In this document: positions 2,202 to 50,116 of the stretch, one piece after another | Layout of the letters: every line of letters starts with the position of its first letter | Numbering within the stretch: position 1 is the stretch's first letter | NCBI GenBank assembly: GCA_009103225.1 | Contig: RHPI01001428.1 | Coordinates: 62,001-126,000 of the forward strand | Source of the DNA: Chlorokybus atmophyticus | Taxonomy: Eukaryota; Plantae; Mesostigma and Chlorokybus algae | DNA length: 64,000 nucleotides | Reading direction: 5' to 3' | Notes under the pieces: generated by a model | Told to the model about the DNA's origin: nothing | Database searches by the model: none | What the model saw: only the letters and a program-made list of their open reading frames with translations | Translations under genes and position numbers: made by a program

Positions 2202-2441
2202 TGTCGTGCCTGTCATGGTCGAGGGCAACCTTGTCTCGGACAGGCTGCAGAGGAGTGCTAGTGCTGCACGCATGCTAGTGCCGTGCACTGCATTGGAGTC
2301 ATGCAAGCAAAAGACAACCCCCCAATCGTGGGCATAGGCTTGAAGATGAGCCTACGCGGTGTTTAGTGCAGTGGACGAGCCGATGTTGCTCGCCACCTTT
2401 GTGTACAGACTGTGTCGTAGTGCACACAGTCAACAAGCCAC
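2202..2441 (-). repeat. Repeat A, terminal copy (240 bp); partner at 3093-3332
   Basis: Direct repeat of 3093-3332 at an offset of 891 bp, with 2 visible substitutions (CC/TT). Confidence 0.95.
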
Positions 2442-3090
2442 TACGATAGGTAGTGCTGTGGACACAGTTCTTTGCATGAGTGGATAGAATGATACACTGT
2501 TAAGTGAGGTGAATGAGTGTGCAACACGTGGATACAACACCCTGACTACTGAAACAACACACCACCGTCAAGCTCACAGCAATGGCAGGCACAGCGCACA
2601 AGAGCATGCACCGTGTCTCACGCAGTAAGGGAATTCTTGGCAACCGGGGCAGCGTGCTTCCAGTTCAAGTCGCTTCACAAGCTCTTTAGAAACAGAGTCT
2701 TTACTTCTTAGTACTCCTAGTACTCACAGTACTCACTTACAGTGTCACCAGCCAGTCTGGTGACGTGACTTCCTACTTATACATGTCAAATCATGACTGT
2801 GCAGTGCCACGCGGGCACTAGGCCAACGGTCACATCGAGGCCTCATGCTATTTCGGAAATCTCCTAAGACTTGATATAGCACATGTGTTCTTAACAGACT
2901 TGCAACTGATCAGCTACGCGCGGTCCCTACAGACAGGTCTATAAAGTAGCCCTAGCTACAGGCTACATGAGTGATACAGTAGCTAGCAGTAGGCTGGGGC
3001 TCGCGCGGTCTTCATGCTGGTAGCCCGGGCGTGGGGCTGGGTGTAGGCATGCTTGAGAAGAACTGGCATGCGAGGGTAGATGGCATGACA
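2428..3090 (-). repeat. Repeat B, internal/3' copy (~663 bp); partner at 12675-13346
   Basis: About 99% identical to 12675-13346 (about 5 substitutions and one 9-bp indel in a CACAGTACT repeat). Overlaps repeat A by the 14-mer AGTCAACAAGCCAC. Confidence 0.95.
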
Positions 3091-3092
3091 GC

Positions 3093-3332
3093 TGTCGTGC
3101 CTGTCATGGTCGAGGGCAACCTTGTCTCGGACAGGCTGCAGAGGAGTGCTAGTGCTGCACGCATGCTAGTGCCGTGCACTGCATTGGAGTCATGCAAGCA
3201 AAAGACAACCCCCCAATCGTGGGCATAGGCTTGAAGATGAGCCTACGCGGTGTTTAGTGCAGTGGACGAGCCGATGCCGCTCGCCACCTTTGTGTACAGA
3301 CTGTGTCGTAGTGCACACAGTCAACAAGCCAC
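3093..3332 (-). repeat. Repeat A, internal copy, directly after the polypurine tract
   Basis: Matches 2202-2441. On the minus strand it follows AGGGGGGG (3339-3332) and joins B through a GC dinucleotide (3091-3092). Confidence 0.95.
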
Positions 3333-3339
3333 CCCCCCT
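3332..3339 (-). other. Polypurine tract (AGGGGGGG)
   Basis: Short purine run about 40 nt after the pol stop codon, immediately followed by TGG at the start of repeat A. Confidence 0.6.
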
Positions 3340-3377
3340 GAGATTCTGGGGTAGCCCTCTGCTCCAGAACTCAGTTC

Positions 3378-6300
3378 CTACCGACTGTGTGGGGGACCGT
3401 TGATGCGGCAGTCATCGCACCAGTACTCCCACAAGGGTACTGCGTCCAGTGGAGGGTCAAGGCAGTAGCAGTGCATGCCTTGATTACAGCCGTCGCATAA
3501 CATCATCAATGGGTCGTCGTCGGCGCTGCCACACTTCTCGCATCGGGTGCTGCGCAGCGGACGCGGGTGCTGGATCTTGGTGAAGCCAGCAATGTAGGGG
3601 AGATGACAGGGCGCGCAGTTGACCATGTTGTCCTTCATGCGCTCGCCTCGTTGTCCCAACAGGTCCAGTACCCCTGTGGGGTGCACCTTCAATACCTTGT
3701 AGACAGCACGCCCGACGGAGGTATCGAGGGTGTCGCGTGTAGACGCCATACGGTAGACGAAGTCTCCTGACTCGAAGCGGCGCTCCCGCTCCTTGTAGAA
3801 ACCACTGCGCACACGCTCGTAACGCAGCGTGTCGCGGTGCTGCGCGATGCGCAGGTTGTTGAAGGCCATGGGGACTGTGTGTTCGAACAGCGCACTGCGC
3901 ACTGTCAGATCATACAACATCTCGTCGGGGTTGTCGAGATTGTCCACCACTCTGTCGACCTCCTGCTGTGCGCGGAAAGGGAGCAATGGCTGCCTTCCGA
4001 ACAGTAGATAGTATGGGCTGTACTCTCGCAGGGCTGCCTGCTTGGACAGCCGGTAGCCCATTGCTACCCATGGGAGGTGATCATCCCAGGTATTCTTCTC
4101 GTAGGCAAGGACGTACTTGCGCAGTGCCTTCTTGATGGTCTGCACGGTACGCTCGGCGAGGCCGTCGGCCTGCGGGTGGTCGCGTGAGGTGCGACGGTGG
4201 TCGATGAAGCATCTGTCGATAAGCTTGTCGAAGGCTCCTCTGAACTCCGTACCCTGGTCGGTGATGACTTCAGCGCAGCTGCCGAAGCGTCCGAGTACAT
4301 GGGAGAGGAAAGCCTGGGCTACTCCCTCACTGCTCTTGTCGGGCAGGGGCACCAGCTCCACCCACTTGGAGAAGTGCTCGATCATGACGAGGATGTAGCG
4401 GTTGCCTCGCGCTGAGGGCGCTAGGTCTCCGAGGATGTCCAGTCCCCAGCGGTAGAACAACCCGGAAATGGGAAGGGGATGCAAGGTGGCATTGCGCGTG
4501 TTGAGGCTGGCGCGAACCATGTCACACTGCTGACAGTTGCTGACGAACTCCCGCACCTGTCTGTGCACCCCATACCACCAGTACTGGGTCCTGACCAGGC
4601 TGACCGTGCGCTTGACACCGAAGTGCCCGAGCTCGGTGTGAAGGGAGGAGATGATGCCTTCACGTGCAGCTGGTGTGGGGACCTCCTGATCTGCATCTTG
4701 TATCCGTCGATACAGCCTGTCGTTGGCCCAGCGGTAACGCTGAGTGCGTTGTCGGACGCGGTCCTTCTCGCGTGCGCTCATGCCTGCTGGAAGTTGTCCA
4801 GTCTGAAGCAGTGCGAGGGATGGCTCGTCCAGCCAGATGTCTTGTCGTGTGTCGGTGGGTGCCAGCTCCTCATCATCCACCTCAGGGTCGGCAGCGATTG
4901 CTTCTTCTGATAAAGGATCGGTGGTGGTGATGGCGGGCTCGAGAGCGGGCATGTCCCCGTCTGCTGCTGCCTCAGCGATCTGAGTCCTGCGTCCTGAGCG
5001 TAGCGCAGCGACAGCGAACATGGTGGCCACACCTGCAGGTGCAGCTGTAGGACCCAACTCATGTCGGGCGCCTGTGGCGTCGTTGGTGCTGAGGTGGGGG
5101 TTACGGCTGAGGCCATCCGCATCCTGGTTGGCAAGGCCTGCGCGGTGTTCCACCTCGAAGTCGTACTCCTGGAGCAGCAGCGCCCATCGTGCTAACTTTC
5201 CTGTCAAGTGCTGGTTGTTCATTAGCCACTTGAGGGGTTGATGGTCAGTGACCAGTTGGAACTGCCGTCCAAACAGAAAGGGTCGGAAGAAGGAGATGGC
5301 CCACACTGCGGCGAGACACTCCCCTTCGTAGCTGCTGTAGTTGGCCTCAGCACTGTTGTTGCTGCGGCTGGCGTACGACACTACGCGCTCCTTCTTGTTG
5401 TTGTCATGCTGTACGAGCACGGCCCCCATGCCGAGCTTGCTCCAGTCTGTGTGCAGGATGAACGACCTGGTGTAGTCAGGGCGTTGCAGAATGGGAGCTG
5501 TGGTGAGGCGGAGCTTCAGCTCCTGAAAGGCCTCCTGTTGTGCCTCCTTCCACAAGAACTCGGTGTCCTTCTTCAGTAGTTCGTTGAGAGGCCTTGCGAT
5601 CTTGGCAAAGTCTTTGACAAACCGGCGGTAATAGTTGGCAAGGCCGAGGAAGGCCCGCAGCCGCGTGAGGTCTGTGGGGGCAGGGATAGCCACCAGTGCC
5701 TCCACTTTGGCCTGCTGTACGTACACACCATGGGGCACAATCATGTGTCCTAGGTAGGGTACCTTGTGGGTGAAGAAGGTGCACTTGTCAGGGTGCACCG
5801 TCATCCCGACTTTCTTCAGCCTCTGTAGCACCTCTTCGATGTGCTGGAGATGCTCCTCATTGCTGTGAGTGAAGATGAGGATGTCGTCGATGTAGCAGCG
5901 CGCGAAGTCCAACCCCTTGAGGGCTTTGTCCATGACGCGCTGGAACTTGGCCGGAGCGTTCTTCAGTCCGAAGGGCATGACCTTCCACTGGTACAGCTGC
6001 CGGTTTCCCCAGAAGGAAGTCTTGTGCTTGTCCTCCTCCTTGATGGCGATCTGGTTGTACCCTTGGCGCATATCCAAGATACTAAAGACCGTGCATTCTC
6101 CTAAATCGTCAAAGATGCCTTCTGCGGTAGGCATTGGATACCTGTCCTGCTTGGTCTTGTCGTTTAGGGGGCGATAGTCGCCACACATGCGCCGGTCTGT
6201 CCAGTTGCCTGATAAATCTTTCTTCAGGGGCACGACGGTCGCGGCCGCAAAGTCCAATGTGGACTCCTCGATCAGGCCTGCATCTAGCAGCGCCTTGCAC

Positions 6301-9300
6301 CTCTGTTCCACCAAGTCTTCTTCTAGCTTGGAGAGGCGGTACTGTCTTCTGAACACCGGTTCGGTGTCCACTAGTTCAATGTCCATCTGGTATGCCGAGC
6401 ATATGCCCAGCTCCTTCACACTGAAGCTGAATTGGCTCCTCCACCTGTTGAGGAGAGCCTCGAGTTGCTCTCGAGTCTGGCCTGTGGCCAGCGGTCCAAT
6501 GCCGTGGGACCATGAGGTAGCGTTGGCGACCACTGGAATGTCTTCCACAGTGATTGCTGCCTGCTCCTCCATGTGGGCGGTCTCGAGGGCGGTGTGTGCT
6601 GCTTTGGTCTCTGGAAAGCGAGCAATCCACCCCCCAGCCAGGTGTTCAAGCTCCTGGAAGGACACATGGCGGTCCTGGAGAGCAAAGCACATTTCCAAGT
6701 ACCACACCATGCTGTTCTGATCCATGGCGCGTCCTAACAACTGACATTGTTGACTGGTTGTCAGCGTGGAGCCTGTGATGCTGCTTGGAAAGAATCCCAT
6801 AGCACGCTCGCGCTCGCGGGCATTGGGTTCTTCCAGCTGTCCAGTGTTGGAGTCCAACACCATGCCGTCGCCTGCATTGCGGAACGCGTAGGAGCCTGGA
6901 TAGGATACTAGTGTGGGTAGCGCGCGGCGCGGCTGACCAGGCTGGTTGCACTGGTAGAAGTGGTGGTGGTCAAGGCGTGTGACTGGTTGCGCTGTGCGTC
7001 CAGGGTCCAGGATGTCATCGACGACGAGATTTCGTGGCCGATTGCTGTATAGGTACTCTGCCAGAAACAGGTCTTCCACAATGGCCAGGTTGGTCCACTT
7101 GGCGCGGACGCGGTGTGCACGAGATCCATGACGCGCGGCGTTGATTTTGAGAGGATGCCCCAGCAAGGAGCATACTTGCCGATAGGCCTTGGCGACGTGA
7201 TGCCGCTTGTCATCCTCGGAGTGCACATTCTCGATGATGTACCCCAAGGGCCTAGCGATCTGACTGATCTGTAGGAGTTTGATGACTCTCATTAGCTCCC
7301 AGAACAGCTGTGAGCGAGGATCCGAGAGCCCTTGGCCTCTGCCTGCCCTGGAGTGCCCTTGACACTCCCACCCTGCTATCAGCAGGTCAATGTTGCCGAC
7401 TGCCTGCAGGTGATCCTTGGTAATCCAGCGGATGTCCTGCGGTAGAGCCTTCTGGCTCCCTTGCAGTGCCGACAGTGGTAGCTGCTGCGGGTAGCGCTGG
7501 TGCAGCTGTCGTAAATGATGGCTCAGAGCCTCCTGTGCATGAGGGTCAGGGTCACAGTAGAGGTACTTGGTGACTGTTGTTCCTGTGTTGAGGACAGCCG
7601 CAAGCCCACTGCCTATGCCTCCGAACAGCTCCAGCACGGTGATGCCTTGTTGTCGGCGGAACATGTGGAACTCCACAACTCCCGTAGCTATGTGGTACTG
7701 CTCCTGCACTGTAGCCTGGTCTTTGTAGGCAGGGAAGTGTGCAGTGAGCTGAGGCCTGGTCAGCAGCATGTGTGCTGCTACTTGTGCGCTCCAGCGACGC
7801 TCGGATGGCTCCTGAAAGGCCACTTCTTTGGTGACAGTCTCCTGAGACTCATCGTACGGTGTAGGAGAGTCCTCTTCAGCGTTTAGGCTCGGGCTCGAGC
7901 TCGTTGCAGTTGTCCTCGGCTGCGTTCGGGCACGAGGCACACGTGAGCTTTTTGTAAGACTGTAGGTGGCTGCTGCAGCCGATCTTCGTTGCGAGCGGTC
8001 CTTGGCCACCAGTTCGAGAGGTAGGAATCCCTGCTCCTCTCCATCGTCCTCATCCCAATGTGGTCGAAACCATGCCTGCTCAGTCCAGCAGTCCAGCCCC
8101 ATGCCGACAGGGAAGTTGCAGTCCTGTCCCAACAGTAGGTCAAAGGACCCGGCATCGGTGACCACACACCTTTGTACAATCTCGGTGCTGTGGGAAGGGT
8201 TTAGTCCGGTGAGGCGGATGCTCACAGCCTGCTTGGTAAGGCCGAGCACCTTGTCGCGGTTGCCGGTTGCGGTGTCCAGCTGGTAGGGACAGGGAAGCAG
8301 CTCAGCGCTGGTGATGCCGAGATCTCGTGCGAGGTAGCGCCCAATGATGACAGGCTGTGCTCCAGTGTCCAGCATCACGCGTTTGGGTGCCCGCCCATTG
8401 ACGGTCACGTGCTTGCCTTGGTTGGCGATCATGGCTGCATTGGCGTTGATGCGCAGCCTCTTGAAGCGACGGAACCTCTTGCGTGGAGAGACTGTTGCTT
8501 TACTCTCATCTGCGGGGCCTGACCGTAGGGCAGCCAGGGCTCCTCTGCCTGATGGATCTTGTGGGCCTCCTTGTCCTCGGCTTTGTCCAAACCGTCCTTG
8601 TCGCGGTTGCTGGTACACGCGTGGTGGCCTAGGCACTGGAGGTGCTGCTGCAACCTGTCCAAGTGGAGGTGCAGGAGGGTTGACCCTCTGTGCAGCTGTT
8701 GTCATGCCAGGAGGAGTGGCCAGTGGCTGTGGCGGGAACCCTGGAGGACCTGGTGTTTGCGGGACTGCCTCTCGTGCAGCCTGCTCCTCTGCATAGGTCC
8801 ATCGCACAGCATGGGCTGCCTCTCTGACTAGTGTACCTTCCCATGTAGCCGTCGCATTGTTGTCCACGTCTATATAGCGATGGTTCTGAGGCATGGGCTG
8901 CAGGTACACTGCGCGTAGGAGCCGCGCTCTCATGTCGTGGGTGATGGTGGGCACCCTGAGGATCCCTGCCATGTAAGCATCCCATCTGCCGTTGACCACT
9001 CCCACTTCCAGCACTGTTATTGCTCGTGTGCGTACAGTGAGGCGGGTCTCTGGCTGTTGGACATGCTGCTCGTAAGCAGCGGCGATGCGCCTGCGCTGAC
9101 GTCCTGCCTCCACTCCTGGCAAACTCAGTATAGCCTCCAGAGCTCCCTCCAGAGTGTCAGTGGCGGCGGAAGCCACTTCATCATAGGCTTGCCGTATGGA
9201 GCGAAGGAATGCGTCCACCCACGCTATTCTGGCGCCGAAAGCGAACAACGGGACTGCGGGATGGTTGGTGACCAGCCACGTCACTAACCGTGCGCGTGCC

Positions 9301-12300
9301 GCGTTGCCATTGTCTCGCATCCCAAGCATCTGCCGAAGTCCAATGCCTTCTTGCCGATGCAGCATGGTTGCTTGTCGCAACAGAGCAGTGCGTAGTTGTT
9401 GCTCTCCAACCAGTCCTGCTCCATCTCTTTGTGTACACCCTTGTGGTGTAAGGTAGCCCCTCCCTGGCTCCCTTTGGTCCTCAGGTAGATCCTCCACCAG
9501 CGCAGGCAGCAACGGGGCGATCACCCCCCTGATTTGTTGAGCCAACGCCCTCGCTTGGTCAGAGTTGGTCTCGACGAAGAGCGGAGTGGTGCTGGAGGAT
9601 GGACCAGCAGTTGGTGACTGAGGTATTGGTGCACGCGTAGCTTCAAGAGCTTGTTCACGTGCAGCAATGGCGGCAGCTTGATCCTGTCGCCAATGATATG
9701 CTTGTTCCAGTGCGTGGTAGCGCTGATGAAGGCGAGCGGTTGTAGGAGGTCCGAGTGCTTCATCAGTGCCCAAAGGCAGGTCGGCTGCGTCGGCGATGCG
9801 CTGCTGGACGGCGTCTCGGCGGTCCCGATACGTGTCCAACGGGCTGGGTTCAAAGGTGGTGGTTGGCATGCGTGCAGGCTGGCGCGGGGCGGTCTGCATG
9901 TTGTTGTGCAACGCCCAGAACAGCTGCAGAGCCAACTCCAACACTACAGGTGGGCTGTAGCTGATCAAAAACACCCTGTCACGCATCGGAGGTGCAGTGC
10001 CAGCAAGGATCTCATCTTCTAACTGGTGTTGAGTGAGTGCTGGAAGGGTGTGAACCTCTGGTAGCGGGAAGACGCGATCATCGCGGGCGACACGCGTGGT
10101 GCGCTCCCCCCCCCGACCGAAGGCGATGGTAGTGGGGTCTGCTCCGCGCAGGATGGTTTCCCATGCTCGCTCAGCTTGCTGACCAGTTGGGACAGCCTGA
10201 GTGACGTCGAGAGCGGGCAGAGTGGCTGCGCGCGTCGCTGCAGAGACAGCGGGCTCGACGATGGCCATTGTGGCAGTTGCGACGGTATCGGTCGGTGGTG
10301 CGAGAGTTGTCTCAACGCCTACGGACAGAGGCACTGCTGCAGTGGGAAGTGCACCGCCCACTGGTGCAGATTCGGTAGAGATGGCGGCTGTTGCCATTGT
10401 GCTCACCAGTGTCGGCGTCACGGTGTCCATCGGTGTACCAGGTTGTGGTGCAACTGGAGTGGGTGCTGCTGACGTTGGTGGAGTCGACGTTGTAGCCGGT
10501 GTGGCTGTTGCTGCGGAGGCAGCACCACTGGTGGCTTCGGAGGAGGTGCCTGCTGATGTTGTTGCAGCTTCCCCTCGTGCTCGTCGTGATGGTTGCACGC
10601 GGGACGGAGTGTTCCTGTCTCTCTCGCGTTTTGCAGCCATCAGCGCCCATCGGGCAGTGTAGCAGGCGCGGTAGTCCTGCTCCTTGTCTTCCTCCAAGCG
10701 TGCCATACGTGCCATGAGGGCTGCCATATGGTCATCAGCTGGTGGGTTGGCTGAAGCCTTGGCGGCAACAGCAGCAGCGCGCGGACGTGTCTCTGGTCCC
10801 TTACGCTGAGGAGGTCTGTTCTTCCCCCTGTAGCCTTGCTCTTCCTTGCGAACACTGGCGTTGTTGTTGTTGTTACTGCCACCAGCGTTGTTGCTGTTGT
10901 GGGCTCCAGTGTTGTTGCTATTGTAGCCACTGAAGTGGTTGCCAGTGTGGCCTCCAGTGTTGTTGCTGTTGTAGCCACTGAAGTTGTTGCCAGTGTGGCC
11001 TCCAGTGTTGTTGCTGTTGTAGCCACCGGAGTAGTTGTGGTTGTAGCTGTTGGCGGGCCTCAACTCTGGGAACTTGAGCCAGCAGACTGACTCCAAATGA
11101 CCAGTCTTGTGACAGTGGTCGCAAACCAAAGTTGAGTATTCTTCGGTGCACTCCTTTTGGTAGTGCCCATGCCGTCCACAGCGATGACACAGCACAGGGG
11201 CAGCAAGTGCAGCATGAGCTGACCGTTTCCCTTTGTCGCGTGCTGGTGGAGCGTCCCGGCCACGGTCGCGGCGAGGAGGCTCAGTTGTCGTGCTGACTAC
11301 AGGCCGTACGGCGCTGCGGTTGGTGTCCAGCACTGCCTTCTCATACACCAAGCGCTTGTGGATGGCTTGTGCAGTCTCGAAGGCTTCTTTGAGGGTGTAG
11401 CCAAGGGGCCTGCTGTAGTTCAGAGTCAGGCGTGTCGACTCGCTCAGAGCAGCATCCAACTCATTGACGTATATCACTGCAGCAGCCTCCTCACTGACAA
11501 TCTTGTAGTCAGTGTCCTTCAGCAGACCTTCCAGTCTGGAGTACAAGCGGAGGGGATCCTCATTGGGCTTGCGTCGGAAGCGTCTCAGCTCCTCAACCTT
11601 GCTGGTGGTCTGAGGAGGGAAGGTACGGCGCAGGGCAGCGTACAGGTCCTTGAGTGGAGAATCAGAGATGGCAGCACCTACGGTGATGGCTGGTGCGCGC
11701 AGTGCTACTGACCCGAGGGTGAAAGCGCTGCCTCCTGCACGAGAGCCAGGTGTTGCTGGAGGTAGAGGAGTACCCCACTCTGCGGCTGCCGCTTGCTGTA
11801 CAGCTCTTTGTTCCTCAATGATGATGGCAGAACGGTCAAGGATGCGGACTCGACGTGTGGCCTCCTTGGACTCAACTTCTGCAGGGGTCAAGTTGACAAG
11901 TACCAACTCTGGTTCCTCCTCCTCTGCCTGCTTGAGAGCTGCAGCTATGGTCAAGCCTGTTACTGCAACTGAAGTGGCAGGTGGAATGACACCTGCTGGA
12001 CGGTGCAGGGCTGCAGATGCTATGGTGCTGGCAAGCTCGCCATAGCCGTCTACTCGATGCAGTTCAGCAACGGACTTCCAGACATCGTGTGCTTCATGAT
12101 CAAGATACTGAGCAGCAATGTGGAAAGAGATCTCATCTGACCAGTCTTTGTTCTTCAGTGCTTGCTGCCGCATCTTGGAGTGGAACTTGATGATGAACTC
12201 ATCCAGCGAGGTGGTGCCGGCACGTCCGGAGAAGCGCAGGGATGTGGTTGAACTGGAAGATTCCATCTCGTTGTCGTCGCTGTCCGATGATAGTGGAGAA

Positions 12301-12473
12301 GCTGGATGACGAGGAGTAGAGTGGAGCGGGGTGAAGCTGGAGATGGAGCGCGAGCCTCTGCTGCTGCGGTCGATGCTTCCGTCACTGGTCCGCTCGTAGG
12401 TGAGATTGGTGGTTGGGCTCCAACTGCTGAGGTCACCCTCGTCTATTGGGGAGAACGGGGTGGGCCTGCTCAT
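3378..12473 (-). CDS. 3031-aa Gag-Pol polyprotein: Gag, two CCHC knuckles, aspartic protease, C5-cytosine methyltransferase, RT, RNase H, integrase, C-terminal PHD finger
   Basis: CHRCGRHGHYQKEC and CDHCHKTGHLESVC (~11085-11195); LDTGA protease (DTG at 8361-8369); DNMT motifs LELFGGIG, GWECQG, IENV, AHRVRAKWTNL (~6700-7660); RT CGDYRPLN and YIDD (5883-5894); RNase H TDWS; integrase HHCC and D,D-E; C4HC3 PHD (3408-3542). No stops or frameshifts. Confidence 0.95.
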   Translation of the reverse strand: MSRPTPFSPIDEGDLSSWSPTTNLTYERTSDGSIDRSSRGSRSISSFTPLHSTPRHPASPLSSDSDDNEMESSSSTTSLRFSGRAGTTSLDEFIIKFHSKMRQQALKNKDWSDEISFHIAAQYLDHEAHDVWKSVAELHRVDGYGELASTIASAALHRPAGVIPPATSVAVTGLTIAAALKQAEEEEPELVLVNLTPAEVESKEATRRVRILDRSAIIIEEQRAVQQAAAAEWGTPLPPATPGSRAGGSAFTLGSVALRAPAITVGAAISDSPLKDLYAALRRTFPPQTTSKVEELRRFRRKPNEDPLRLYSRLEGLLKDTDYKIVSEEAAAVIYVNELDAALSESTRLTLNYSRPLGYTLKEAFETAQAIHKRLVYEKAVLDTNRSAVRPVVSTTTEPPRRDRGRDAPPARDKGKRSAHAALAAPVLCHRCGRHGHYQKECTEEYSTLVCDHCHKTGHLESVCWLKFPELRPANSYNHNYSGGYNSNNTGGHTGNNFSGYNSNNTGGHTGNHFSGYNSNNTGAHNSNNAGGSNNNNNASVRKEEQGYRGKNRPPQRKGPETRPRAAAVAAKASANPPADDHMAALMARMARLEEDKEQDYRACYTARWALMAAKRERDRNTPSRVQPSRRARGEAATTSAGTSSEATSGAASAATATPATTSTPPTSAAPTPVAPQPGTPMDTVTPTLVSTMATAAISTESAPVGGALPTAAVPLSVGVETTLAPPTDTVATATMAIVEPAVSAATRAATLPALDVTQAVPTGQQAERAWETILRGADPTTIAFGRGGERTTRVARDDRVFPLPEVHTLPALTQHQLEDEILAGTAPPMRDRVFLISYSPPVVLELALQLFWALHNNMQTAPRQPARMPTTTFEPSPLDTYRDRRDAVQQRIADAADLPLGTDEALGPPTTARLHQRYHALEQAYHWRQDQAAAIAAREQALEATRAPIPQSPTAGPSSSTTPLFVETNSDQARALAQQIRGVIAPLLPALVEDLPEDQREPGRGYLTPQGCTQRDGAGLVGEQQLRTALLRQATMLHRQEGIGLRQMLGMRDNGNAARARLVTWLVTNHPAVPLFAFGARIAWVDAFLRSIRQAYDEVASAATDTLEGALEAILSLPGVEAGRQRRRIAAAYEQHVQQPETRLTVRTRAITVLEVGVVNGRWDAYMAGILRVPTITHDMRARLLRAVYLQPMPQNHRYIDVDNNATATWEGTLVREAAHAVRWTYAEEQAAREAVPQTPGPPGFPPQPLATPPGMTTAAQRVNPPAPPLGQVAAAPPVPRPPRVYQQPRQGRFGQSRGQGGPQDPSGRGALAALRSGPADESKATVSPRKRFRRFKRLRINANAAMIANQGKHVTVNGRAPKRVMLDTGAQPVIIGRYLARDLGITSAELLPCPYQLDTATGNRDKVLGLTKQAVSIRLTGLNPSHSTEIVQRCVVTDAGSFDLLLGQDCNFPVGMGLDCWTEQAWFRPHWDEDDGEEQGFLPLELVAKDRSQRRSAAAATYSLTKSSRVPRARTQPRTTATSSSPSLNAEEDSPTPYDESQETVTKEVAFQEPSERRWSAQVAAHMLLTRPQLTAHFPAYKDQATVQEQYHIATGVVEFHMFRRQQGITVLELFGGIGSGLAAVLNTGTTVTKYLYCDPDPHAQEALSHHLRQLHQRYPQQLPLSALQGSQKALPQDIRWITKDHLQAVGNIDLLIAGWECQGHSRAGRGQGLSDPRSQLFWELMRVIKLLQISQIARPLGYIIENVHSEDDKRHHVAKAYRQVCSLLGHPLKINAARHGSRAHRVRAKWTNLAIVEDLFLAEYLYSNRPRNLVVDDILDPGRTAQPVTRLDHHHFYQCNQPGQPRRALPTLVSYPGSYAFRNAGDGMVLDSNTGQLEEPNARERERAMGFFPSSITGSTLTTSQQCQLLGRAMDQNSMVWYLEMCFALQDRHVSFQELEHLAGGWIARFPETKAAHTALETAHMEEQAAITVEDIPVVANATSWSHGIGPLATGQTREQLEALLNRWRSQFSFSVKELGICSAYQMDIELVDTEPVFRRQYRLSKLEEDLVEQRCKALLDAGLIEESTLDFAAATVVPLKKDLSGNWTDRRMCGDYRPLNDKTKQDRYPMPTAEGIFDDLGECTVFSILDMRQGYNQIAIKEEDKHKTSFWGNRQLYQWKVMPFGLKNAPAKFQRVMDKALKGLDFARCYIDDILIFTHSNEEHLQHIEEVLQRLKKVGMTVHPDKCTFFTHKVPYLGHMIVPHGVYVQQAKVEALVAIPAPTDLTRLRAFLGLANYYRRFVKDFAKIARPLNELLKKDTEFLWKEAQQEAFQELKLRLTTAPILQRPDYTRSFILHTDWSKLGMGAVLVQHDNNKKERVVSYASRSNNSAEANYSSYEGECLAAVWAISFFRPFLFGRQFQLVTDHQPLKWLMNNQHLTGKLARWALLLQEYDFEVEHRAGLANQDADGLSRNPHLSTNDATGARHELGPTAAPAGVATMFAVAALRSGRRTQIAEAAADGDMPALEPAITTTDPLSEEAIAADPEVDDEELAPTDTRQDIWLDEPSLALLQTGQLPAGMSAREKDRVRQRTQRYRWANDRLYRRIQDADQEVPTPAAREGIISSLHTELGHFGVKRTVSLVRTQYWWYGVHRQVREFVSNCQQCDMVRASLNTRNATLHPLPISGLFYRWGLDILGDLAPSARGNRYILVMIEHFSKWVELVPLPDKSSEGVAQAFLSHVLGRFGSCAEVITDQGTEFRGAFDKLIDRCFIDHRRTSRDHPQADGLAERTVQTIKKALRKYVLAYEKNTWDDHLPWVAMGYRLSKQAALREYSPYYLLFGRQPLLPFRAQQEVDRVVDNLDNPDEMLYDLTVRSALFEHTVPMAFNNLRIAQHRDTLRYERVRSGFYKERERRFESGDFVYRMASTRDTLDTSVGRAVYKVLKVHPTGVLDLLGQRGERMKDNMVNCAPCHLPYIAGFTKIQHPRPLRSTRCEKCGSADDDPLMMLCDGCNQGMHCYCLDPPLDAVPLWEYWCDDCRINGPPHSR

Positions 12474-12662
12474 ACAGCTGGTCCAGAGGTGAAAGGGTAG
12501 AGTGCTTGTGCTCTACCGTCTATCCTGATGCTGTTACCACCCAACACACTAGTGCTTGTGCGCACTATGTGATGACAATGATAATGAATGCCCAGCGATG
12601 TATCCCTGGGTGCAGACTGAACTATCTGATGCAGATTGCAACACACTCACTTGTGCAAAGAG

Positions 12663-12677
12663 GGTGACACTGTAAGT
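12663..12677 (-). other. Self-complementary primer-binding site (ACTTACAGTGTCACC)
   Basis: Perfect 15-nt reverse complement of 12991-13005 inside the 5' repeat. No tRNA-type PBS follows the 5' repeat. Confidence 0.75.
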
Positions 12678-13346
12678 CAACAAGCCACTACGATAGGTAG
12701 TGCTGTGGACACAGTTCTTTGCATGAGTGGATAGAATGATACACTGTTAAGTGAGGTGAATGAGTGTGCAACACGTGGATACAACACCCTGACTACTGAA
12801 ACAACACACCACCGTCAAGCTCACAGCAATGGCAGGCACAGCGCACAAGAGCATGCACCGTGTCTCACGCAGTAAGGGAATTCTTGGCAACCGGGGCAGC
12901 GTGCTTCCAGTTCAAGTCGCTTCACAAGCTCTTTAGAAACAGAGTCTTTACTTCTTAGCACTCCTAGTACTCACAGTACTCACAGTACTCACTTACAGTG
13001 TCACCAGCCAGTCTGGTGACGTGACTTCCTACTTATACATGTCAAATCATGACTGTGCAGTGCCATGCGGGCACTAGGCCAGCGGTCACATCGAGGCCTC
13101 ATGCTATTTCGGAAATCTCCTAAGACTTGATATAGCACATGTGTTCTTAACAGACTTCCAACTGATCAGCTACGCGCGGTCCCTACAGACAGGTCTATAA
13201 AGTAGCCCTAGCTACATGCTACATGAGTGATACAGTAGCTAGCAGTAGGCTGGGGCTCGCGCGGTCTTCATGCTGGTAGCCCGGGCGTGGGGCTGGGTGT
13301 AGGCATGCTTGAGAAGAACTGGCATGCGAGGGTAGATGGCATGACA
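12675..13346 (-). repeat. Repeat B, 5' copy (672 bp), carrying the element promoter
   Basis: Direct repeat of 2428-3090; begins TGTCATGCC on the minus strand. Confidence 0.95.
13032..13037 (-). promoter_or_regulatory. Putative TATA box (TATAAG) of the Gypsy element
   Basis: Its first T lies 32 nt upstream of position 13005, the predicted transcript 5' end that pairs with the PBS. Confidence 0.5.
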
Positions 13347-15685
13347 AAGAAGAGTTGAATGTAGCGCTGATGTTCTTATATGTACACGAAGATTGTGTCA
13401 TTTTTAACAACTTATATTCATACATCAAGTTTATATGAAGAAATTGTCACAATAAATCTTCAAAGTTCTTGTTGGCCCAAGTTGTAATGATTCTGGCACC
13501 GGGTAGCCTGCCAACAGCCGCGTAATCCGGCTCCACTACTTGCACAAGTAGTGGCACATTCAGCAAAGTTGAACGGGCAAATCACCATTGCAGCGGCTAG
13601 AGCCCCTTCTAGTATAGGCTTTCCAATGAGGCAGATGCTAAGCATGCAAGTACGCACACGAGCACACGTACACACAGTAAAACATCTCAATAAAAGCCAA
13701 GGTAGTGGCTTGGCCTCGCTCCGTGTACTGATTATGTGCATGTAGGGCGGAGAGGCAGCCAGCAAGACATAACAAATAGCATGTGCAAGTAGCTGCTTTG
13801 TTGCAGCAAGGTATAGTATGATGCATTGATGATACACAAGCTCATTTATTCATTACTTACCACTTCATACACATTTCTGAACACTTTTCCTACACATGGA
13901 TGCACATGCCATTAAAACCACCTCGATAGGTTCCCTGATCAAGCTGTTACGAGAACGTTTTCGCAAAAGATAGAGGGTCTCAAAATGTAAGCAAACATCA
14001 TACATACTTAGATACGTGCCCCCGTGTGGTAATAGATTGCCTTGTGCTGCTTTTGTGCATGCTTGTGCTTGAGTGCATGCTGGTGAATTGTGTGCTTCAA
14101 TGTGCTCGAGTGTACAAAAGATGGTATGCTTGCAGGATTGCATGCATAGTGTCACAAGCATTAGTCATGCATGTTGTGACGCATACCAAGCATGCAAGCA
14201 GTCAGTGGCAGTCGCATATCATTTCACCGGGCTAAAGCTATGTACTTCTTCACTAACTACAACTACTTTGGCTACCCCGTTAGTCATGCATGCATGCGTG
14301 TATGCTCAATCATTACCTGTCCATGGCACCAGCACAAGCGTCAGGATAACGTAGTATGGACGCAGAGCAGCGTTACAGCAGGACAATGCAGCGTGCGAAT
14401 GCGCCCCCCTCTCCTCTCTCTTTCTCTCGCCCCACTCCTCCACTCTCTCTCTCCCCTCCCTCTTCTCACGCCCCCTCTTCCTCTTCCCACGTCCGCCTCT
14501 GCCTTCTCATGGTTGTGCTGTAAGCCTTGCCGTTCTGTGTGTGAGGCAGGGCCCCTCTGCCCCGCCCCTTCTCACACAAACCTACTTGTAATTTAATACC
14601 AGCACAGCAAGGGTCCAATTACGTGTTTCCATCCCTAACAACCGCTCACAGCAACAACATACAGCAGCGTGCTATTGCACACAGTCACTGACATACGACA
14701 ACTGCTCACGACGCTCCGGCCGCACCCGCCAGCACAGCGTCCTCCTCGGCAGTCGGTGGGACCGTCTGCAGCGGCGCCCAGACCCCTTTCTGCTCTGGCT
14801 CTCTCTGTGTCCCGGCACAGCCGACGCGCAGTGCAAGTCCGCACTGCACAGTGGTGCTGCAGCGTTGTGTCGTTGCTGCCGGTTAGGTGTGGGTGGTGAG
14901 TGCGTCTTGCATCAGATTCACGGACAGTCTCGCCGCATCTTTTGCACAACCTGTCCACTTTATGTCTTCAAAGCCACCTCAAGCTTATGTAGACGTCGCA
15001 AGCAACTCAAACCAGGCGGCACCGTGCATGGGAACATGTGCATGTTACTTGGCAACCATTACAAAGCCACCCTCGTCACGTCCCCAGGCATCCCTTTGAC
15101 AAAATGCATGACGCCATTGCTTGATGCAAAGTGAATGTGCATGTTGTGGGTGTTGCAAGCTTGCTAAGACATCAAGCCTATAGACACTCATACACAACTT
15201 GTCAGCTGCAACTTGAGTTACTCATACCTAAGCCCTTGACGGGGTGTTAACCTAGCTCACACAAACCCGCAACGCATACAACACACTGCGATGCGGAGAG
15301 AGGGTGCAGCGACCTGAAGAGAAGCTACCAATGCAAACTCTAAACTCAAATCATTGAGGAGGTGTACATACAGCGCAGCTGAGCTGCCGCGAGGAGAGGC
15401 GTGCACTGCGCGGATCCAAAACAGGGGGATGGGGCTGAGTGAGGGAGCGGCCTGCTACGGTGCGGGGAACGTGTCGGTGCGGACGATCGCGGTGGTGGTG
15501 GTGGTGGTGGTTGCGTGCGGGTGTTGGTAGTAGCGCTGCGTCCCGCCGGCTATGACCCGCTGTCTGGTGAAGGGGAGGCGTCGGAGGGTGTCTCGCATCA
15601 TGTCCAGCAGCTCCGTGAAGAAGCGCGCGACGGTGTCCGCGAGCAGCCGCATCCTGTCTTGGAACGCGCGCAGTGCACGGTCGGT

Positions 15686-17206: not shown

Positions 17207-20200
17207 ATGGGCGTCGCTGCCGCCGGCCCGGTCCGAGAAGGTGGGCCAGGCCTGGCGGCTGCTCTCAGGGACGCATGCCCAGCGCGATACGCCGCAGCAG
17301 CAGAATGGCTAGGGGCTCTGCTGACGCCAGCAGCAGCGCCGCGGCAGCAGCAGGGAGAGGTGGAGCCGGCGGCGGCGCTGCTAACGCACGTGGCCGCCGC
17401 ATGCGCTGCGGGAGGAGGGAGCACCGCACCACCGTCTCTGCTCACCGACCAGCAGCTGAGCGAGTGAGTGAGCTGCGATGCCCTCACCGAGGCGTTGCTC
17501 AAAATACATACTGCGCTGCATTGTGTGCTGTTGGGGCCAGGCCAATTTTGTTGCAGTGAATGTGGTTGTTGCTTCGAGGCTGCCACGGTGATCAATCCGC
17601 AATAAGGCATCACAAGACATGTGTATAGTTGATCCTGTTCTTACCCACGATGCATGGCGCTCACTCGTCACTTGCCATTGCAGTTTCGAGCAGCTGGAGG
17701 CGCAGGGCAAAGTGCTCAGGGTGAGTACTGACAAGGATGGTAACATTGTCAAGGAGTCCTGCTTTTATACGTGAGGGATGCCTGTGTGCTCTTCTTCTCG
17801 TGACGCGCACACAAAGGGACATCACATGCGCGTGCAGGGTGCCGAGCTGGAGGCGGCCATCAGCAGGCAGGCAAGGACAGCCTCGAGCGGTAGCCGCGTC
17901 GGAGGCGTGGGTGACGACAGCGATGATGATGATGATGATGACATCAGGTGCGTCCATGTGTGCGTGTGTGGTTGTGAGGACAGAAAGAGGGAAGGGGAAG
18001 GGTCCGGTGACGACATCCTCTCGGCAACAGAGAGCGCAGGTGCAGGGGGTTGGTGCGTGGGGTTGTGCCCGCGCCCCAGCGCCGTGGTGCGCCCCTCTCC
18101 CACTCCCTCACTGCGACTGTGTGCTGTACAAACAATTAGCCAACGAACACAACTCCTTGTATCTGAGGACCCCTGATGACTGACAGTAGCTTTGGTCATG
18201 TTGGCGTTTCACGCACACGCGCTGCACGAGTGACCCAGTCTATCAAACATGACACAGGGAGCTGGTGTCGAGGGCGCGTGAGGAGGCGGCAGCATTGAGA
18301 ATGCGAACACGTACCGTGCTTGCAGCACGGTGTCAAGGCGTGGCATCGTGCCGCGAGGCCATGGCAGCGGACCGCCTGCGCCGCTCCGCCGCGCTTGCAA
18401 ACGCACGCCGCGACCTCCGCGTTACCCAGGAGCGCGCTTTGCGTCGCGACAGCGCCTTTGCTGACCTCCTCGACCGCCTCGTCACGGCCACCCACGACAT
18501 GGCGCGCATGCTGGGCTCCGCAGGTGCAATGCCGATGTTGTTGTGTTCAACGGACATGCTGCGCAGGGACGAGCTGGTACTTACAGGCACTCGCGTGCAG
18601 GTGCTCAGTCGGGCGTGGTTGGCTGCGATTTGAGTGCGTACGCTGCGCGTGACACGGACTGCACGCGAGAACTGCACCGCAGACACCTCGCGTCTGCTGC
18701 GGCTATTATGGACGGAGGCACGGAGGTCGCTTGCGCTGCACCGGCAGGTTGGCTTTGGCCCCACAATACATCCCCTGGACTGTTGAGGTGAGGCTTTGCA
18801 ATGCCACATGATCCTCTCTCATCTCATGCCTTGCAGGAGAGGACAGGCAGGGAGGAGCGCGAGCAGCCCGGGAGCGGGAAGAGCACGAGCTGACGCGCTT
18901 GGTGTCCATGTGAGTGATACAGCACTTCTCTGTTGGTTGGAGTAGCCGGTATCAACGATTGTTGTGATGTGACACGCACAGATGGGAGGTGAGTTTGGCG
19001 CAGCATGTGGACGCCAAGGTGTCCCTTGCCAAGGAGCGCGCGCGGCTCGACCTCCTCAGGACCGATTGCCACCCGCAGCATCGCCTGTCTGCAGAGGGCG
19101 TGGAGGAGCGGCTCGAGCGCGTGCGGGCAGAGACCCGCGCCCTCCACACGCAGGTTTGATGCTGAGCCTGTTGCTGCAACCACATGCTGGGCCACGTGCG
19201 ATGGCAACCCACCATGCGCCCGCAGGTCCTGCCAATACTGTTTCGGGAGGTTGCGCGACTGCAGCGTGTGCACGCCCTCCTAGGTGAGAGCGGATGTGGC
19301 GGTGGGGTATAATTGCAAGTAGGAGCGCATGCATGCAGTTGCTGAGACGGCAAAGCTGTGCAGGGGAGTACAGAAGAGTGGAGACGACACAGCGCGCGCG
19401 TCAGTCAGAGCAGCAGCAGGTAAGCATGAAAGCAGGACGATGGCTGCTTCATGCTTGAGCGCGTCCCTTGAAGTGTTGTTCCTTTTTGCGTCGGCAGTTA
19501 GAGGAGCAGTTGGCAGCGCAGGCGGCGCGCAACGGCCTGCTTGCGGCGGCGTGCTCGGCCGACACGCGCCGCCTGCACCACGCCGCTCACCTACTCACCG
19601 ACACTCGCAACGCCCTCGCCGAACTCGCCGCCAACAACGCCGCGCGATCGGTGAGCACAATCGTGCGCGCGTGCGACAGTGTGACGGCAACACACTCGCC
19701 GTTGCGTGAATTCTTCTCGCCTTGCAGGAGTTGTATAAGGATCTGAGGGAGCGCGCGGAGAGGGGGGTGCAGCGCAGCCGAGGGGGCAGCAGAGGCAAAG
19801 CGGATGCGTTTTTGCTGCGGCTTCACCGCATAGTCAACGACAGTGGCAGCGACGACGGGCGGGAGTCGCCCAACGAGTACGTGAGCGCACGCGTGCTGGC
19901 GCAGCAGTGCGCGAGCGCGAGAGAGGAGGCCCACAGGCTGGCGGGAGTGCTGCGTACCGACGTGCCAGAAGAGCGCCGTTGTGCTCACCAGCAGCTGTGA
20001 GAGCCCTGTTGCTTGTTGACTTCCCACGTAGCACTCTCATTCATGCACTGGTAAGGTGTGTTTGTGTTGCTGATATTCTTACTCACAGCTTGGAGAGGGT
20101 GCGTGCGACTGCTGCTCTGCTTGGCGTATCGCCTTCAGAAAGACATCACACCAACCACCAGCAGCAGAAGCTGCGCTTGCTGCCGCAGGTACGGTACTGT

Positions 20201-25078: not shown

Positions 25079-34311
<9,233 letters not shown>

Positions 34312-44027: not shown

Positions 44028-47000
44028 TCAACTCTGAGCCCCAAGCAACAAGTTTGGAACTTGGTTGGTGGTAGTGGTTTTGTCATGCAGTCCGCGAGCA
44101 TGTCCTTCGTGCTGCAATATCTGAACTCTACCTCGCCTCGTGCAACTCTCTCTCTCTCTCACTAGGTGGTGCATGATGTCGATGTGCTTCGACCTGGCAG
44201 ATGTAATGGGGTGCATGCTCAACTTGAGCGCTCCTTGGTTGTCACACATAATTGTGACACGGCTCAATGCATATCCCAAGTCAGTAACCAACTTGCGAAG
44301 CCACAATGCTTCCTTCACCGCAGATGAAGCCGCATGTACTCGGCCTCAGTGGTTGATGCAGCAGCTATTGATTGTAGTCGGCTGTTCCAACTGACGACGC
44401 CTCCTCCCATAAGGAAAGTGTATCCTGTGGTAGACCTCCTCGTGTCGAGGTCCCCCGCATAGTCCGCATCACAGTAACCATGTACTATGATGTCCTCTGT
44501 CCTCCCAAAAGTAATGCCCACGTCCAGGGTGCTACCAAGGTAGCGAAGAACTCCTTTTGCCGCCTTCCAGTGCTCTATGGTTGGTGCTAACATGTGTCTC
44601 ACCAAGACTCCCACAGCTTGTGCCATGTAAGGCCTCGTGCTGATGGACAAGTAAGTGAGGCTCCCAATCAGCTCATCATATGAATATGTAGCCTTGTCAA
44701 GCACCATGGTAGTGTCTTGTGCCTTGAGCAGATGTACTCCCACGCTCAGTGGTGGTGCCTTGCCCTTGGCGCTTTGCAACTTGAACTTCTTGAGTACATC
44801 CAGGACCATCCGTTTTTGAGTGACCTTAATTGTCCTTGTAACTCTGTTTCTGGTGATGATAACGCTGAGGAACATGAGTGCATTGCCAAGATCTCGAATC
44901 TTAAAAGCGGATTGCAGTGTCACTTTCATGTGTGACATTGCTGCAGTGTCATGTGATGCCAAGATGATGTCGTCCACGTATACCAGCAACCACACTTGGC
45001 CGTCGTCACTGATGAAGAGCCCAGGATCTAATAGTGATTGCTGAACGCCCACTTTCTCTAGCTTCTTGCTGAGCCGTATGTACCAGACTCTTGGCGCTTG
45101 CCTTAGCCCATAAAGAGCCTTGTGTAGCAAGCAATCTTTGCTTGAGCCTCCCTCCTCGTAACCTTGAGGCTGCTGCATGTATATCTGCTCATCCAACTCT
45201 CCATACAGAAAGCAGTCTTCACGTCCAGGTGGTGCAGCTCCAAGTCCCCTACAGCAACCTTTGCAAGCAGTGCCCTAAAGGTTGTGTGCTTACTAGCAGG
45301 CGCAAACACCTCCTTGCAATTAACGCCCTCCTCTTGTTGGAAACCCTGGACCACAAGTCGCGCCTTGTAGCGCTCAGTGTTGCCCTTGCCATCATGCTTG
45401 ATCTTGTACACCCACTTGACAGGTATAGGCTCGACGCCTTGTGGAACCTGATCAAGTACCCAAGTCTTGATGGCGTGTAGCGAAGCAATCTCCTCATCCA
45501 TGGCCTTACGCCACAACTTAGCATCAGAAGCTATAATGGCCTCATGGTAGGTGCTTGGCTCCTTCTCCTCAGTGGTTTCAGCACTCATAGCCTAAAATCT
45601 TTGGTAAAATCATCATCGCGCTCTGATTCTCACAGGGTAGCGCCTCTGCTGCTCATCTACGGGTGCAATCTTGTCCTTCTCAACAAATGTAGCGAATCAC
45701 CAGGGACCTCCACATTGACAGGTGGTGCGGTGATGACATCCGGCTCATTAGCAATGTCAATGTCCATGGTTGCAGAAGGTGTTATTGGTGAAGTCGCCAC
45801 CATCTTCTCGTCGAAGACAACATCCCTTCGAACCACGATTCTCTCGCTGTCCTCCTTAATCAGGATCCTATATGCCTTGGAGTTTGGCTCGTACCCCACG
45901 GAGATGCCTGTCTCCCTCACATTCTCCAGCTTTCTCCTCAGCTGCGTGGGGATGTGTGGACACGCCTTGGCTCCAAAGACACGCATCACCTCAAGCTTCT
46001 CACCGTAGAACAACTCCCACGGGGTCTTGGCTTTGTTGCTCGTAGGTGACATGTTGCGAATGTAGTTGGCCATGACAAACGCCTCAGCCCACAAAGCTTT
46101 GTCCAGCTTTGTATCTGTAAGCATGGCACGCACGCGCTCCACAAGCGTGCGGTTAAGACGCTCTGCAGCACCGTTTTGTGCAGGGGTGTAGGGTGCAGTA
46201 GTCTCATGCTTGATGTCGTGCTCATCCAGGTAGTTTTTCAAGGTGTGGTTGAGGTACTCAAAGCCCCAATCACTTCTCAATGCCAACACCTTTGTCTTTG
46301 CTTGTGCACCCAGCTAAGTGAGTATCCTCTTGACTATAGCAGCAACATCCGACTTCGCAGCAACGATAATGATAGCAGACAGCTTGCTGAAGTCATCTAT
46401 GAAAGTGACAACGTACCAACTCCCTCCAGTGGACGCAATTGGCATGGGACCGCACACATTCATGTGCACGAGCTGCAAGGGTGCTGTACTGGTGCGCGAA
46501 GAGGTAGGAAAAGAATGCCTAGGCATTTTGCTCAGCACGCACGTCTCGCACATATCACCTTGCAACACCTGCATTAATGTCTTCCGCTTCAATTGATCCC
46601 TTCCACCATGTCCTAAGCCACCAGTCTTGCCAGGTTGTCCCATCCAAGACGTTCAACTCTTTTGTGCCAAAGATGAGCTGTGTCTGATGCAGTGACTGTC
46701 GCACACAATGCATGCTCGCGATCCAATATGATGCAGTACAAGCTCTGTCGCATTGTGCCCTCCACAACAACAATGTTGTTCACCTTGACTTAACACTTTT
46801 TAACAGTGAAGTTAACTTTGGCGCCTGCGCTTGTAGCTCTTCGAACGGAGGACAGGCTCGAAGCTAATCCTGGCACGTGGATCACCTCCTTCAGGGCCAC
46901 TTCGTGTGTAGCGCTCGCCACCACAGTGTGTAAGATGACGGTGCCCACTCCCACAACTTACAAGTGCAGCTTGTTGCCAAAGCTCACTTTCACACCAGCA

Positions 47001-49215: not shown

Positions 49216-49659
49216 GAGCTCAGGCGTGTAGGCGTCCTTCTTCCGCGTGTTTTATGGTAGTAGCCTAGCATCGACCTCATGCACCACCGCAACAAGTGCA
49301 TGCGCAGTGGGAGAGGCCTGGCCTGCCATGGTATGCGCAACATGTATGGCCGAACAGGCATGTTTCACAGGTGCCGGTGGTGGAATCCACCAACATCTTG
49401 TTTAGGAAAAGGGCCACTGTGCCAGGGTCTGCGGGTACGGCAGCCCAGCTACGAGGCGTGCAGAACTTCAAAGCGGCGCCGGTAGCTCTCATGGCCGCGC
49501 AGGGTGCTAGTAGCACGTGACGCCGCTGCAACTGCAGGGTATAAGGTGCGCAGGCGCTCAATCTCATAATCACCGGGGACGTTGAGCATGAGCGACTGCA
49601 GGCTACGCTCGATAGCAGCTGCACATAGCATGTGTTAATGGCCAGGACGCAGTCAATTC

Positions 49660-50074: not shown

Positions 50075-50116
50075 GGTCCAACCATTCCTATTTCATGCTA
50101 TGGAGAGCGTGTCCGC

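Follow-up and report, generated by a model that had tools for sequence, protein, structure and literature searches.

A permuted Ty3/Gypsy element of Chlorokybus atmophyticus with its ends at a palindrome inside the long terminal repeat, and a proposed route of integration from a circle

The window, meaning the whole stretch of DNA analysed here, comprises 64,000 nucleotides (nt) of the alga Chlorokybus atmophyticus (NCBI GenBank assembly GCA_009103225.1, contig RHPI01001428.1, positions 62,001 to 126,000 of the forward strand). It contains an 11,145-nt retrotransposon, located on the minus strand from position 13346 to position 2202, that combines the polyprotein of a Ty3/Gypsy element, including a DDE integrase, with permuted long terminal repeats (LTRs). 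The same arrangement is found in related elements of other assemblies and organisms. The best fit to this anatomy is that the clade integrates from a 2-LTR circle, which would be opened by the integrase at a palindrome located inside the LTR, and this route is considered probable.

Architecture of the element and of its relatives

Self-comparison of the window resolves the element into two repeats, A and B, which in sense orientation follow the order B(13346-12675)-internal-G-run(3338-3332)-A(3331-3093)-GC(3092-3091)-B(3090-2428)-A(2440-2202). The first copy of B (B1, 12675-13346) is a 5' partial LTR that starts with TGTCATGCC and contains the distal part of U3, the TATA box and R-U5. Downstream of the internal region, A1 (3093-3331) represents the proximal U3 part of the LTR in the frame of reverse transcription and ends with GGCACGACA; B2 (2428-3090) is the remainder of the sole complete LTR, A1-GC-B2; and A2 (2202-2440) is a terminal partial LTR that again ends with GGCACGACA. 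The two copies of A differ by 2 mismatches in 239 nt, and the two copies of B by 5 mismatches and one 9-nt indel in 672 nt. No further copies of A or B occur within the window, and an exact-protein look-up with the polyprotein gave no match.

A1 and B2 meet in the near-palindrome GGCACGACA-GC-TGTCATGCC (sense; 3082-3101, central GC at 3091-3092), of which 18 of 20 positions are symmetric and which is the proposed integrase attachment (att) and cleavage site. The termini of the element, TGTCATGCC...GGCACGACA, are the halves of this palindrome minus the central GC. Hence, the TG...CA ends of the integrated element sit at the palindrome, approximately 240 nt inside the A-GC-B unit. Read in sense orientation, the flanks are CAACTCTTCTT directly before and TCTTCTTATT directly after the element, with the target-site duplication TCTT (AAGA on the plus strand) located at 13347-13350 upstream and at 2198-2201 downstream. 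A 7-nt match is also possible because of the periodic flank sequence; a duplication of 4 bp is likely, since the clean duplications of the relatives all measure exactly 4 bp. Both copies of B end with the 13-mer TGGCTTGTTGACT, which is also found directly after the G-run, and one copy of it is common to the terminus of B and the beginning of A at the B/A joint (2428-2440), the LTR-LTR junction of the reverse-transcription frame. A previous reading of the window from its letters (the sequence-only reading) had described this layout, the palindrome with the element ends as the opened site minus GC, and a direct repeat at the B-A join; self-comparison reproduces the layout at every coordinate, and the palindrome and the direct repeat along with it.

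A single intact open reading frame (ORF; 12473-3378, minus strand) encodes a polyprotein of 3031 amino acids (aa). Its Pfam matches are, in order, a gag CCHC knuckle (11142-11189), an aspartyl protease (PR; 8121-8408), a C5 DNA methylase (PF00145, about 7200-7439), a reverse transcriptase (RT; 5739-6197), an RNase H (5163-5552), an integrase (IN) with H2C2 and rve domains (DDE domain at 4176-4673), and a C-terminal PHD finger (3408-3542). The integrase residues D, D and E are readable in the translation with a 35-residue spacing (DD35E). The methyltransferase is Dnmt3-like, its best matches among solved structures being DNMT3A, 3B and 3C, and it is inserted between PR and RT in an otherwise regular Ty3/Gypsy pol order (PR-RT-RNase H-IN, with an HHCC zinc domain). 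Approximately 900 residues (aa 451-1350) are without a Pfam match. Just past the zinc knuckles, the gag part contains a 24-nt (8-codon) tandem repeat (10862-11061) that codes for a repeat rich in N, G, S and T.

The element thereby unites features of several classes. With Ty3/Gypsy elements it shares the DDE pol domain order, in agreement with the initial assignment, and a target duplication in the range of 4-6 bp (TCTT; TCTC, CGGC and GGGC in relatives). Two complete TG...CA LTRs, as expected of this class, are not present: the 5' LTR copy is without A, the primer-binding site (PBS) and polypurine tract adjoin an A-GC-B unit without a terminal CA, and the TG...CA ends are internal to that unit. 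With the DIRS, PAT and Ngaro elements it shares split direct repeats. Tyrosine-recombinase elements with split repeats (PAT, Ngaro, VIPER and TOC1) are not known to make target duplications; the present element and its relatives show 4-bp duplications at four insertions. Two features of the Gypsy-DNMT3 type represented by KnitGypsy-Dnmt3 are found, meaning a C5 methyltransferase within the polyprotein and DIRS-like repeats combined with Gypsy domains. Taken together, the element is probably an active-looking member of a green-lineage Ty3/Gypsy clade that is characterized by an integrase with a C-terminal PHD finger and often by a Dnmt3-like methyltransferase.

Movement by a tyrosine recombinase, acting in cis or in trans as in DIRS, PAT or Ngaro, could be proposed on the grounds that split direct repeats A1-B1-A2-B2 define PAT and Ngaro (PMC4157794), and a degraded retroelement with a Dam methyltransferase lies in the same window. 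The polyprotein speaks against it: a tyrosine recombinase (PF00589) gives no match at E <=0.01, nor at E <=1 on aa 451-2049, which covers the Pfam-free stretch of 900 aa; at these thresholds nothing else matches outside the Gypsy domains either, and the DDE integrase is intact. In addition, TG...CA ends combined with 4-bp duplications are the signature of DDE strand transfer. Such a mode of movement is therefore hardly credible.

Relatives were identified by protein search in Haematococcus, Scenedesmus, Monoraphidium, Cymbomonas, Klebsormidium, Tetraselmis and metagenomes, and their loci (numbered with the prefix L) were obtained by exact protein look-up and through a scan of metagenomes in which an alignment of RT and RNase H was used. 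Five of them (L002, L014, L031, L083 and L087), with a protein identity of 42-59% to the window element, show the layout B-internal-A-xx-B-A with palindrome ends. L002 stems from a long-read metagenome contig and its repeat pairs are 100% identical; L014 and L031 are short-read metagenome elements, L013 and L015 apparently being the L014 locus from other samples. L083 and L087 lie on separate contigs of Scenedesmus sp. PABB004 and represent two insertions that share the termini TGTCAGC...GCGTCA and differ in their duplications (CGGC and GGGC, respectively), so that a check proposed in the sequence-only reading, namely that independent insertions should have the same termini and distinct duplications, was run on this related family and passed. 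Clean 4-bp duplications are thus seen in the window (TCTT), L031 (TCTC), L083 and L087; the flanks of L014 read ATTA/ACTA. The palindrome core CGACAGCTGTCA occurs in 16 related loci, in L031 in the form ACAATTGT with the centre AT, and there is one per LTR wherever an LTR can be delimited. The contig of L020 holds the 3' part of the layout alone. Short-read contigs with one palindrome, single repeat copies or k-mer terminal overlaps (L055, L056, L071 and L078) are uninformative on layout, and metagenome contigs may hold small errors.

Two further observations concern these copies. In some of them, though not in others, approximately the last 15 nt of A (ctacacRtcacgaca) form a tandem duplication (L014:13020-13032, L014:13470-13501 and L020:3532-3562), so that two candidate CA ends are nested in these copies. 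Each of the Scenedesmus insertions is located in an array of repeats of approximately 150-190 nt and therefore has flanks that resemble each other (L083: 4584-4732 and 17252-17400; L087: 9150-9337 and 22200-23373).

These relatives bear directly on whether the window holds a one-off rearrangement or an assembly artefact of a conventional Gypsy element, two of the outcomes by which the earlier interpretation would have failed. A single copy of the exact family in the window would fit such an origin. The same layout with palindrome ends is found, however, in five other elements from separate assemblies and organisms, two of which are insertions in a single genome, and has also been reported for Klebsormidium (PMC5890265); moreover, the duplication flanks the permuted ends exactly. 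The recurrence in other assemblies and organisms therefore practically excludes a rearrangement or mis-assembly, and this explanation is regarded as extremely improbable.

All elements with the permuted layout encode a DDE integrase and a PHD finger. The methyltransferase is located between PR and RT in most relatives and between RNase H and IN in Scenedesmus, and it is absent in L081; the respective regions are L083:9998-14278 (between RNase H and integrase) and window 3408-8408 (between protease and RT). Judging from these positions, the Dnmt3-like module has apparently moved, or has been acquired more than once, within the clade. Because its place varies and L081 is devoid of it, the layout goes with the clade and not with the methyltransferase.

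Reverse-transcription frame and integration frame

The signals of reverse transcription define a unit that differs from the one delimited by the integrated ends. A G-run directly upstream of A is found in the window element as well as in L002, L014, L020, L031, L083 and L087; in the window it belongs to the polypurine tract AGGGGGGG (3332-3339). Directly after U5 lies the predicted PBS ACTTACAGTGTCACC (12677-12663), which is the perfect 15-nt reverse complement of B offset 342-356 (13005-12991), where the predicted RNA 5' end and self-primer GGTGACACTGTAAGT are located. Complementarity of the PBS to B extends over 24 nt in L002, 12 nt in L083 and 11 nt in L014. Compared with 300 shuffles per element, the values of these four elements are reached by 0-3 of 300 shuffles, and that of the window element by 0 of 300. 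A TATA box lies 31-32 nt upstream of the self-primer site of B in two elements, the window element (TATAAG, 13032-13037, at a distance of 32 nt from the predicted RNA 5' end) and L014 (TATAAAAG). In addition, primer C-run and PBS G-run are both of unequal length in the two Scenedesmus copies, the PBS run of 8 versus 6 G changing in parallel with the C-run.

Tf1 of Schizosaccharomyces pombe is reported by Levin and colleagues to be self-priming, with a PBS complementary to the start of its own RNA. The complementarity, the TATA position and the differing run lengths of primer and PBS suggest a putative PBS of this Tf1-like type in the present clade. In contrast to Tf1, which has conventional LTRs, the LTRs of the window element are permuted. 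A tRNA-type PBS, starting with TGG at the 13-mer, was set aside, as self-priming has the 15-nt complement and parallels in three relatives.

From the polypurine tract, the PBS complementarity and the TATA position it follows that the RNA would start inside B, that U5 would end at the end of B, and that U3 would start at A. The LTR of the complementary DNA (cDNA) is hence predicted to be A-GC-B, with outer ends that are without CA, as fixed by the G-run, the self-priming site and the TATA box. The integrated copy would correspond to this cDNA with its ends joined at the B/A joint (2428-2440) and reopened at the palindrome of the PBS-side LTR. An LTR of A-GC-B derived from polypurine tract and PBS, with integrated ends at an internal palindrome, had already been proposed for the window and agrees with the signals found therein.

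The B/A joint itself is variable. Between L083 and L087, the 951-nt A-GC-B-A blocks differ by one substitution, by one C in the primer-like C-run, and at the joint, which reads CCCT-G-TGTGC in one copy and CCCT-ATCC-TGTGC in the other. Joints keep 2-4 nt of the PBS (ACT for the window element, ACTT for L002, G or GT for L083), which is what a U5 end that retains some nucleotides of the primer would produce. In the relatives, joints are blunt or show an overlap of 0-3 nt, plus 2-4 PBS-derived or filler nucleotides, and the 13-nt overlap of the window is absent. An inherited, templated joint would be as conserved as its surroundings; the variation therefore suggests that the cDNA ends are joined by end joining anew in every cycle. 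Because the 13-nt overlap is not found in relatives, microhomology is not required by the mechanism, and circularisation on a microhomology of 10-14 nt, as initially suggested for the window element, does not hold for the clade in general.

Proposed cycle and alternative routes

In the proposed cycle, transcription would start inside B, downstream of the TATA box. The 5' end of the RNA would fold back onto the PBS next to B for Tf1-type self-priming, the G-run would prime the plus strand, and ordinary strand transfers would yield a linear cDNA of the form [A-GC-B]-internal-[A-GC-B] with outer ends without CA. These ends would then be joined, most simply as a 2-LTR circle, whereby the B/A joint would be created anew. 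The DDE integrase would assemble on one CGACA-GC-TGTCA palindrome and cut after CA on both strands. Such symmetric cuts, 2 bp apart, would leave recessed CA-3'OH ends and 5' GC overhangs, meaning the standard substrate of strand transfer. Upon concerted insertion of both ends with a 4-bp stagger, GC would be lost on repair and the 4-bp duplication would be made. A cut in the PBS-side LTR would give B-internal-A-GC-B-A. One intact A-GC-B would thus stay in the provirus and template the next U3, by which the palindrome would be regenerated, and the upstream B would serve transcription. If a single intasome forms on one palindrome, this would also account for a product other than plain B-internal-A.

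There is precedent for the cleavage step. The integrases of prototype foamy virus (PFV) and of human immunodeficiency virus type 1 (HIV-1) cleave palindromic 2-LTR junctions in vitro, giving processed ends (PMC1180852, PMC1905944), and for HIV-1 this requires an integrase tetramer assembled on the symmetric site (PMC1905944). The staggered cut at CA^GCTG put forward in the sequence-only reading is thus sound insofar as a CA^GC cut yields a normal 3'-processed substrate and has retroviral parallels (PMC1180852, PMC1905944); the circle on which it would act is deduced from the layout.

The same final anatomy would arise from a linear cDNA with tandem LTRs. Herein, the RT would jump from the U5 end to the start of U3, producing [LTR]-internal-[LTR][LTR], and the first and the third palindrome would serve the integrase. 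Non-templated addition during such template switching is likewise compatible with a variable joint that contains filler nucleotides, and multimeric head-to-tail forms do exist (L001, L085 and L088). However, the integrase would have to skip the middle palindrome, and the nearest pair of palindromes would give B-internal-A, a non-replicating form that would be the commonest product. Furthermore, the published precedent is palindrome cleavage by a single tetramer holding both ends (PMC1905944). A linear tandem intermediate is accordingly considered unlikely.

Integration could also precede the joining of the ends. An intasome would assemble on the 5' LTR palindrome of the linear cDNA, and the outer ends would be ligated later by host end joining within the chromosome. 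This order of events would give the same product with the same variable B/A joint and would need no nuclear pool of circles. Against it stands that the chromosome break would be bridged by protein alone until repair, and that either LTR would be usable, the choice of the 3' LTR leading to the mirror layout. It is a decidedly unlikely alternative.

Integration from a 2-LTR circle has, in turn, several observations to contend with. While the permutation, the att palindrome and the use of a DDE integrase are well supported, the circle and its cleavage by integrase are deduced from genomic anatomy. The second palindrome of the circle predicts dead mirror copies of the form B-A-GC-B-internal-A, of which none were seen, no search having been made for them. 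The family of the window element is represented in this analysis by one copy. L081 has the form B-internal-A-GC-B with no detectable second A; it is an old element, its B copies being 80% identical. Likewise, L066 shows A-palindrome-B after the ORF, with no second A detected. L002 is located inside older related LTR material, and its junctions (left cccgacaGCTGTC/TGTCAGG, right CCCGACA/caggagcc) give no clean 4-bp duplication. Finally, the head-to-tail arrays L001, L085 and L088, with a single LTR between internal regions, constitute other multimeric forms.

Some details of these loci can be added. The young L002 element is situated at or beside the CAGCTG palindrome of a related LTR that is older and diverged (L002:8590-9370 and 18340-18810), a placement that may reflect a target preference for its own palindrome, recombination or a contig error. 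The array of L001 (L001:1-18357) has a period of 8261-8262 nt with a single A-GC-B between internal regions, and its contig name ends in _c; the arrays of L001, L085 and L088 may be genomic tandem arrays or multimeric intermediates. Clean ends are not found in the Haematococcus loci. In L085 and L088, both of them partial arrays, the decisive end coincides with a deletion or an assembly gap; on its left side, L085 begins with a 12-nt B terminus fused to the integrase region. L086 shows no detectable repeats.

Known systems, surroundings of the element and implications

The closest published counterpart is KnitGypsy-Dnmt3 of Klebsormidium nitens, to which the legend of Fig. 4c in de Mendoza et al. 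2018 (PMC5890265) attributes a DIRS repeat structure (A-coding-B-A-B) with Gypsy domains. Like the window element, it combines a Dnmt3-like C5 methyltransferase inside a Gypsy polyprotein with split repeats. In pairwise comparison, the window polyprotein shares 50% identity with the K. nitens protein P0097 over the part that aligns. At the DNA level, the one K. nitens locus covered, L084, shows no similarity to the window element, which represents a different family; the contig of L084 ends inside the gene, and the layout for K. nitens is taken from the legend. For KnitGypsy-Dnmt3, de Mendoza et al. 2018 give no mechanism, termini, duplication, palindrome or mode of priming (PMC5890265).

Split direct repeats of the order A1-internal-B1-A2-B2 together with a tyrosine recombinase are known from PAT, Ngaro, VIPER and TOC1 (PMC4157794), as the sequence-only reading had correctly stated for PAT, Ngaro and TOC1. 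These elements share with the window element the layout expected for a permuted circular or end-joined intermediate. The window element differs from PAT, Ngaro and TOC1 in its DDE integrase, its TG...CA ends and its 4-bp duplications; where elements of the PAT/Ngaro/TOC1 type possess a methyltransferase, it is Dam-like, whereas that of the window element is of the C5 type. Re-entry of 2-LTR circles into integration is treated for retroviruses in PMC4372172. In retroviruses the palindrome is the U5/U3 joint itself, an ordinary provirus results, and the route is accessory or disputed. In the window element, by contrast, the palindrome lies approximately 240 nt inside the LTR, and the route would give a permuted product and would be obligatory.

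Within the literature searched, no published mechanism for the permuted Gypsy layout was found, the 2018 figure legend being the sole report. The earlier statement that the route was unfamiliar for Gypsy elements thus stands for the mechanism and not for the layout, which the legend of KnitGypsy-Dnmt3 already contains (PMC5890265). New within the same literature are the palindromic att site within the LTR, the 4-bp duplications, the predicted self-priming frame and the variable joint, as well as the spread of the layout over chlorophyte relatives with and without a methyltransferase.

The remainder of the window is rich in repeats. A perfect (CT)618 array (26830-28065, 1236 bp, 100% matches) causes an extreme strand skew in the composition profile and could be real or an assembly artefact. 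The sole clear host gene seen is a fragmented gene of the HEATR5/Laa1 family with long exons (28608-34311; Laa1_Sip1_HTR5, E = 7e-42). Copia-type fragments (RVT_2; copia gag) are located at 44315-45196 and 57785-58570, amid several short dispersed repeat families. The degraded retroelement with a Dam methyltransferase is present in two inverted copies (49277-53100 on the minus strand and about 60000-63950 on the plus strand), whose arms at 49862-50921 and 62522-63581 are 90% complementary. It encodes a gag CCHC knuckle, an RT, an RNase H-like domain and a Dam-type N6-adenine methyltransferase; a tyrosine recombinase was not detected in it, and it may be a DIRS-like or a DAM-LTR element.

The usual teaching is that LTR retrotransposons and retroviruses integrate in the form of linear cDNA, with the LTR tips as substrate of the integrase and 2-LTR circles as by-products. 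The anatomy of the present clade is difficult to account for unless joining of the cDNA ends comes first and the integrase then opens the molecule at an internal palindrome. In its broadest form, the proposal would be that a whole clade of DDE Ty3/Gypsy elements of green and streptophyte algae uses an end-joined 2-LTR circle as an obligatory intermediate, with a palindromic att site inside the LTR and a restriction-like cut by the integrase. Split direct repeats would then be the general footprint of integration from a circle, whichever the enzyme class, and the 2-LTR circle would be productive in nature; this generalization is judged slightly more credible than its opposite. If true, it would make the clade a natural example of integration mainly through cleavage of a circle by a DDE integrase, with a bearing on the dispute over palindrome cleavage by PFV and HIV integrases, and it would explain the independent origin of the split-direct-repeat layout in tyrosine-recombinase elements. 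It would also supply a rule for annotation, as LTR finders that expect two full LTRs would mis-call such elements, and solo remnants would read B-A and not A-B. The Dnmt3-like methyltransferases and PHD fingers of the clade are, in addition, relevant to the engagement of transposons with host chromatin.

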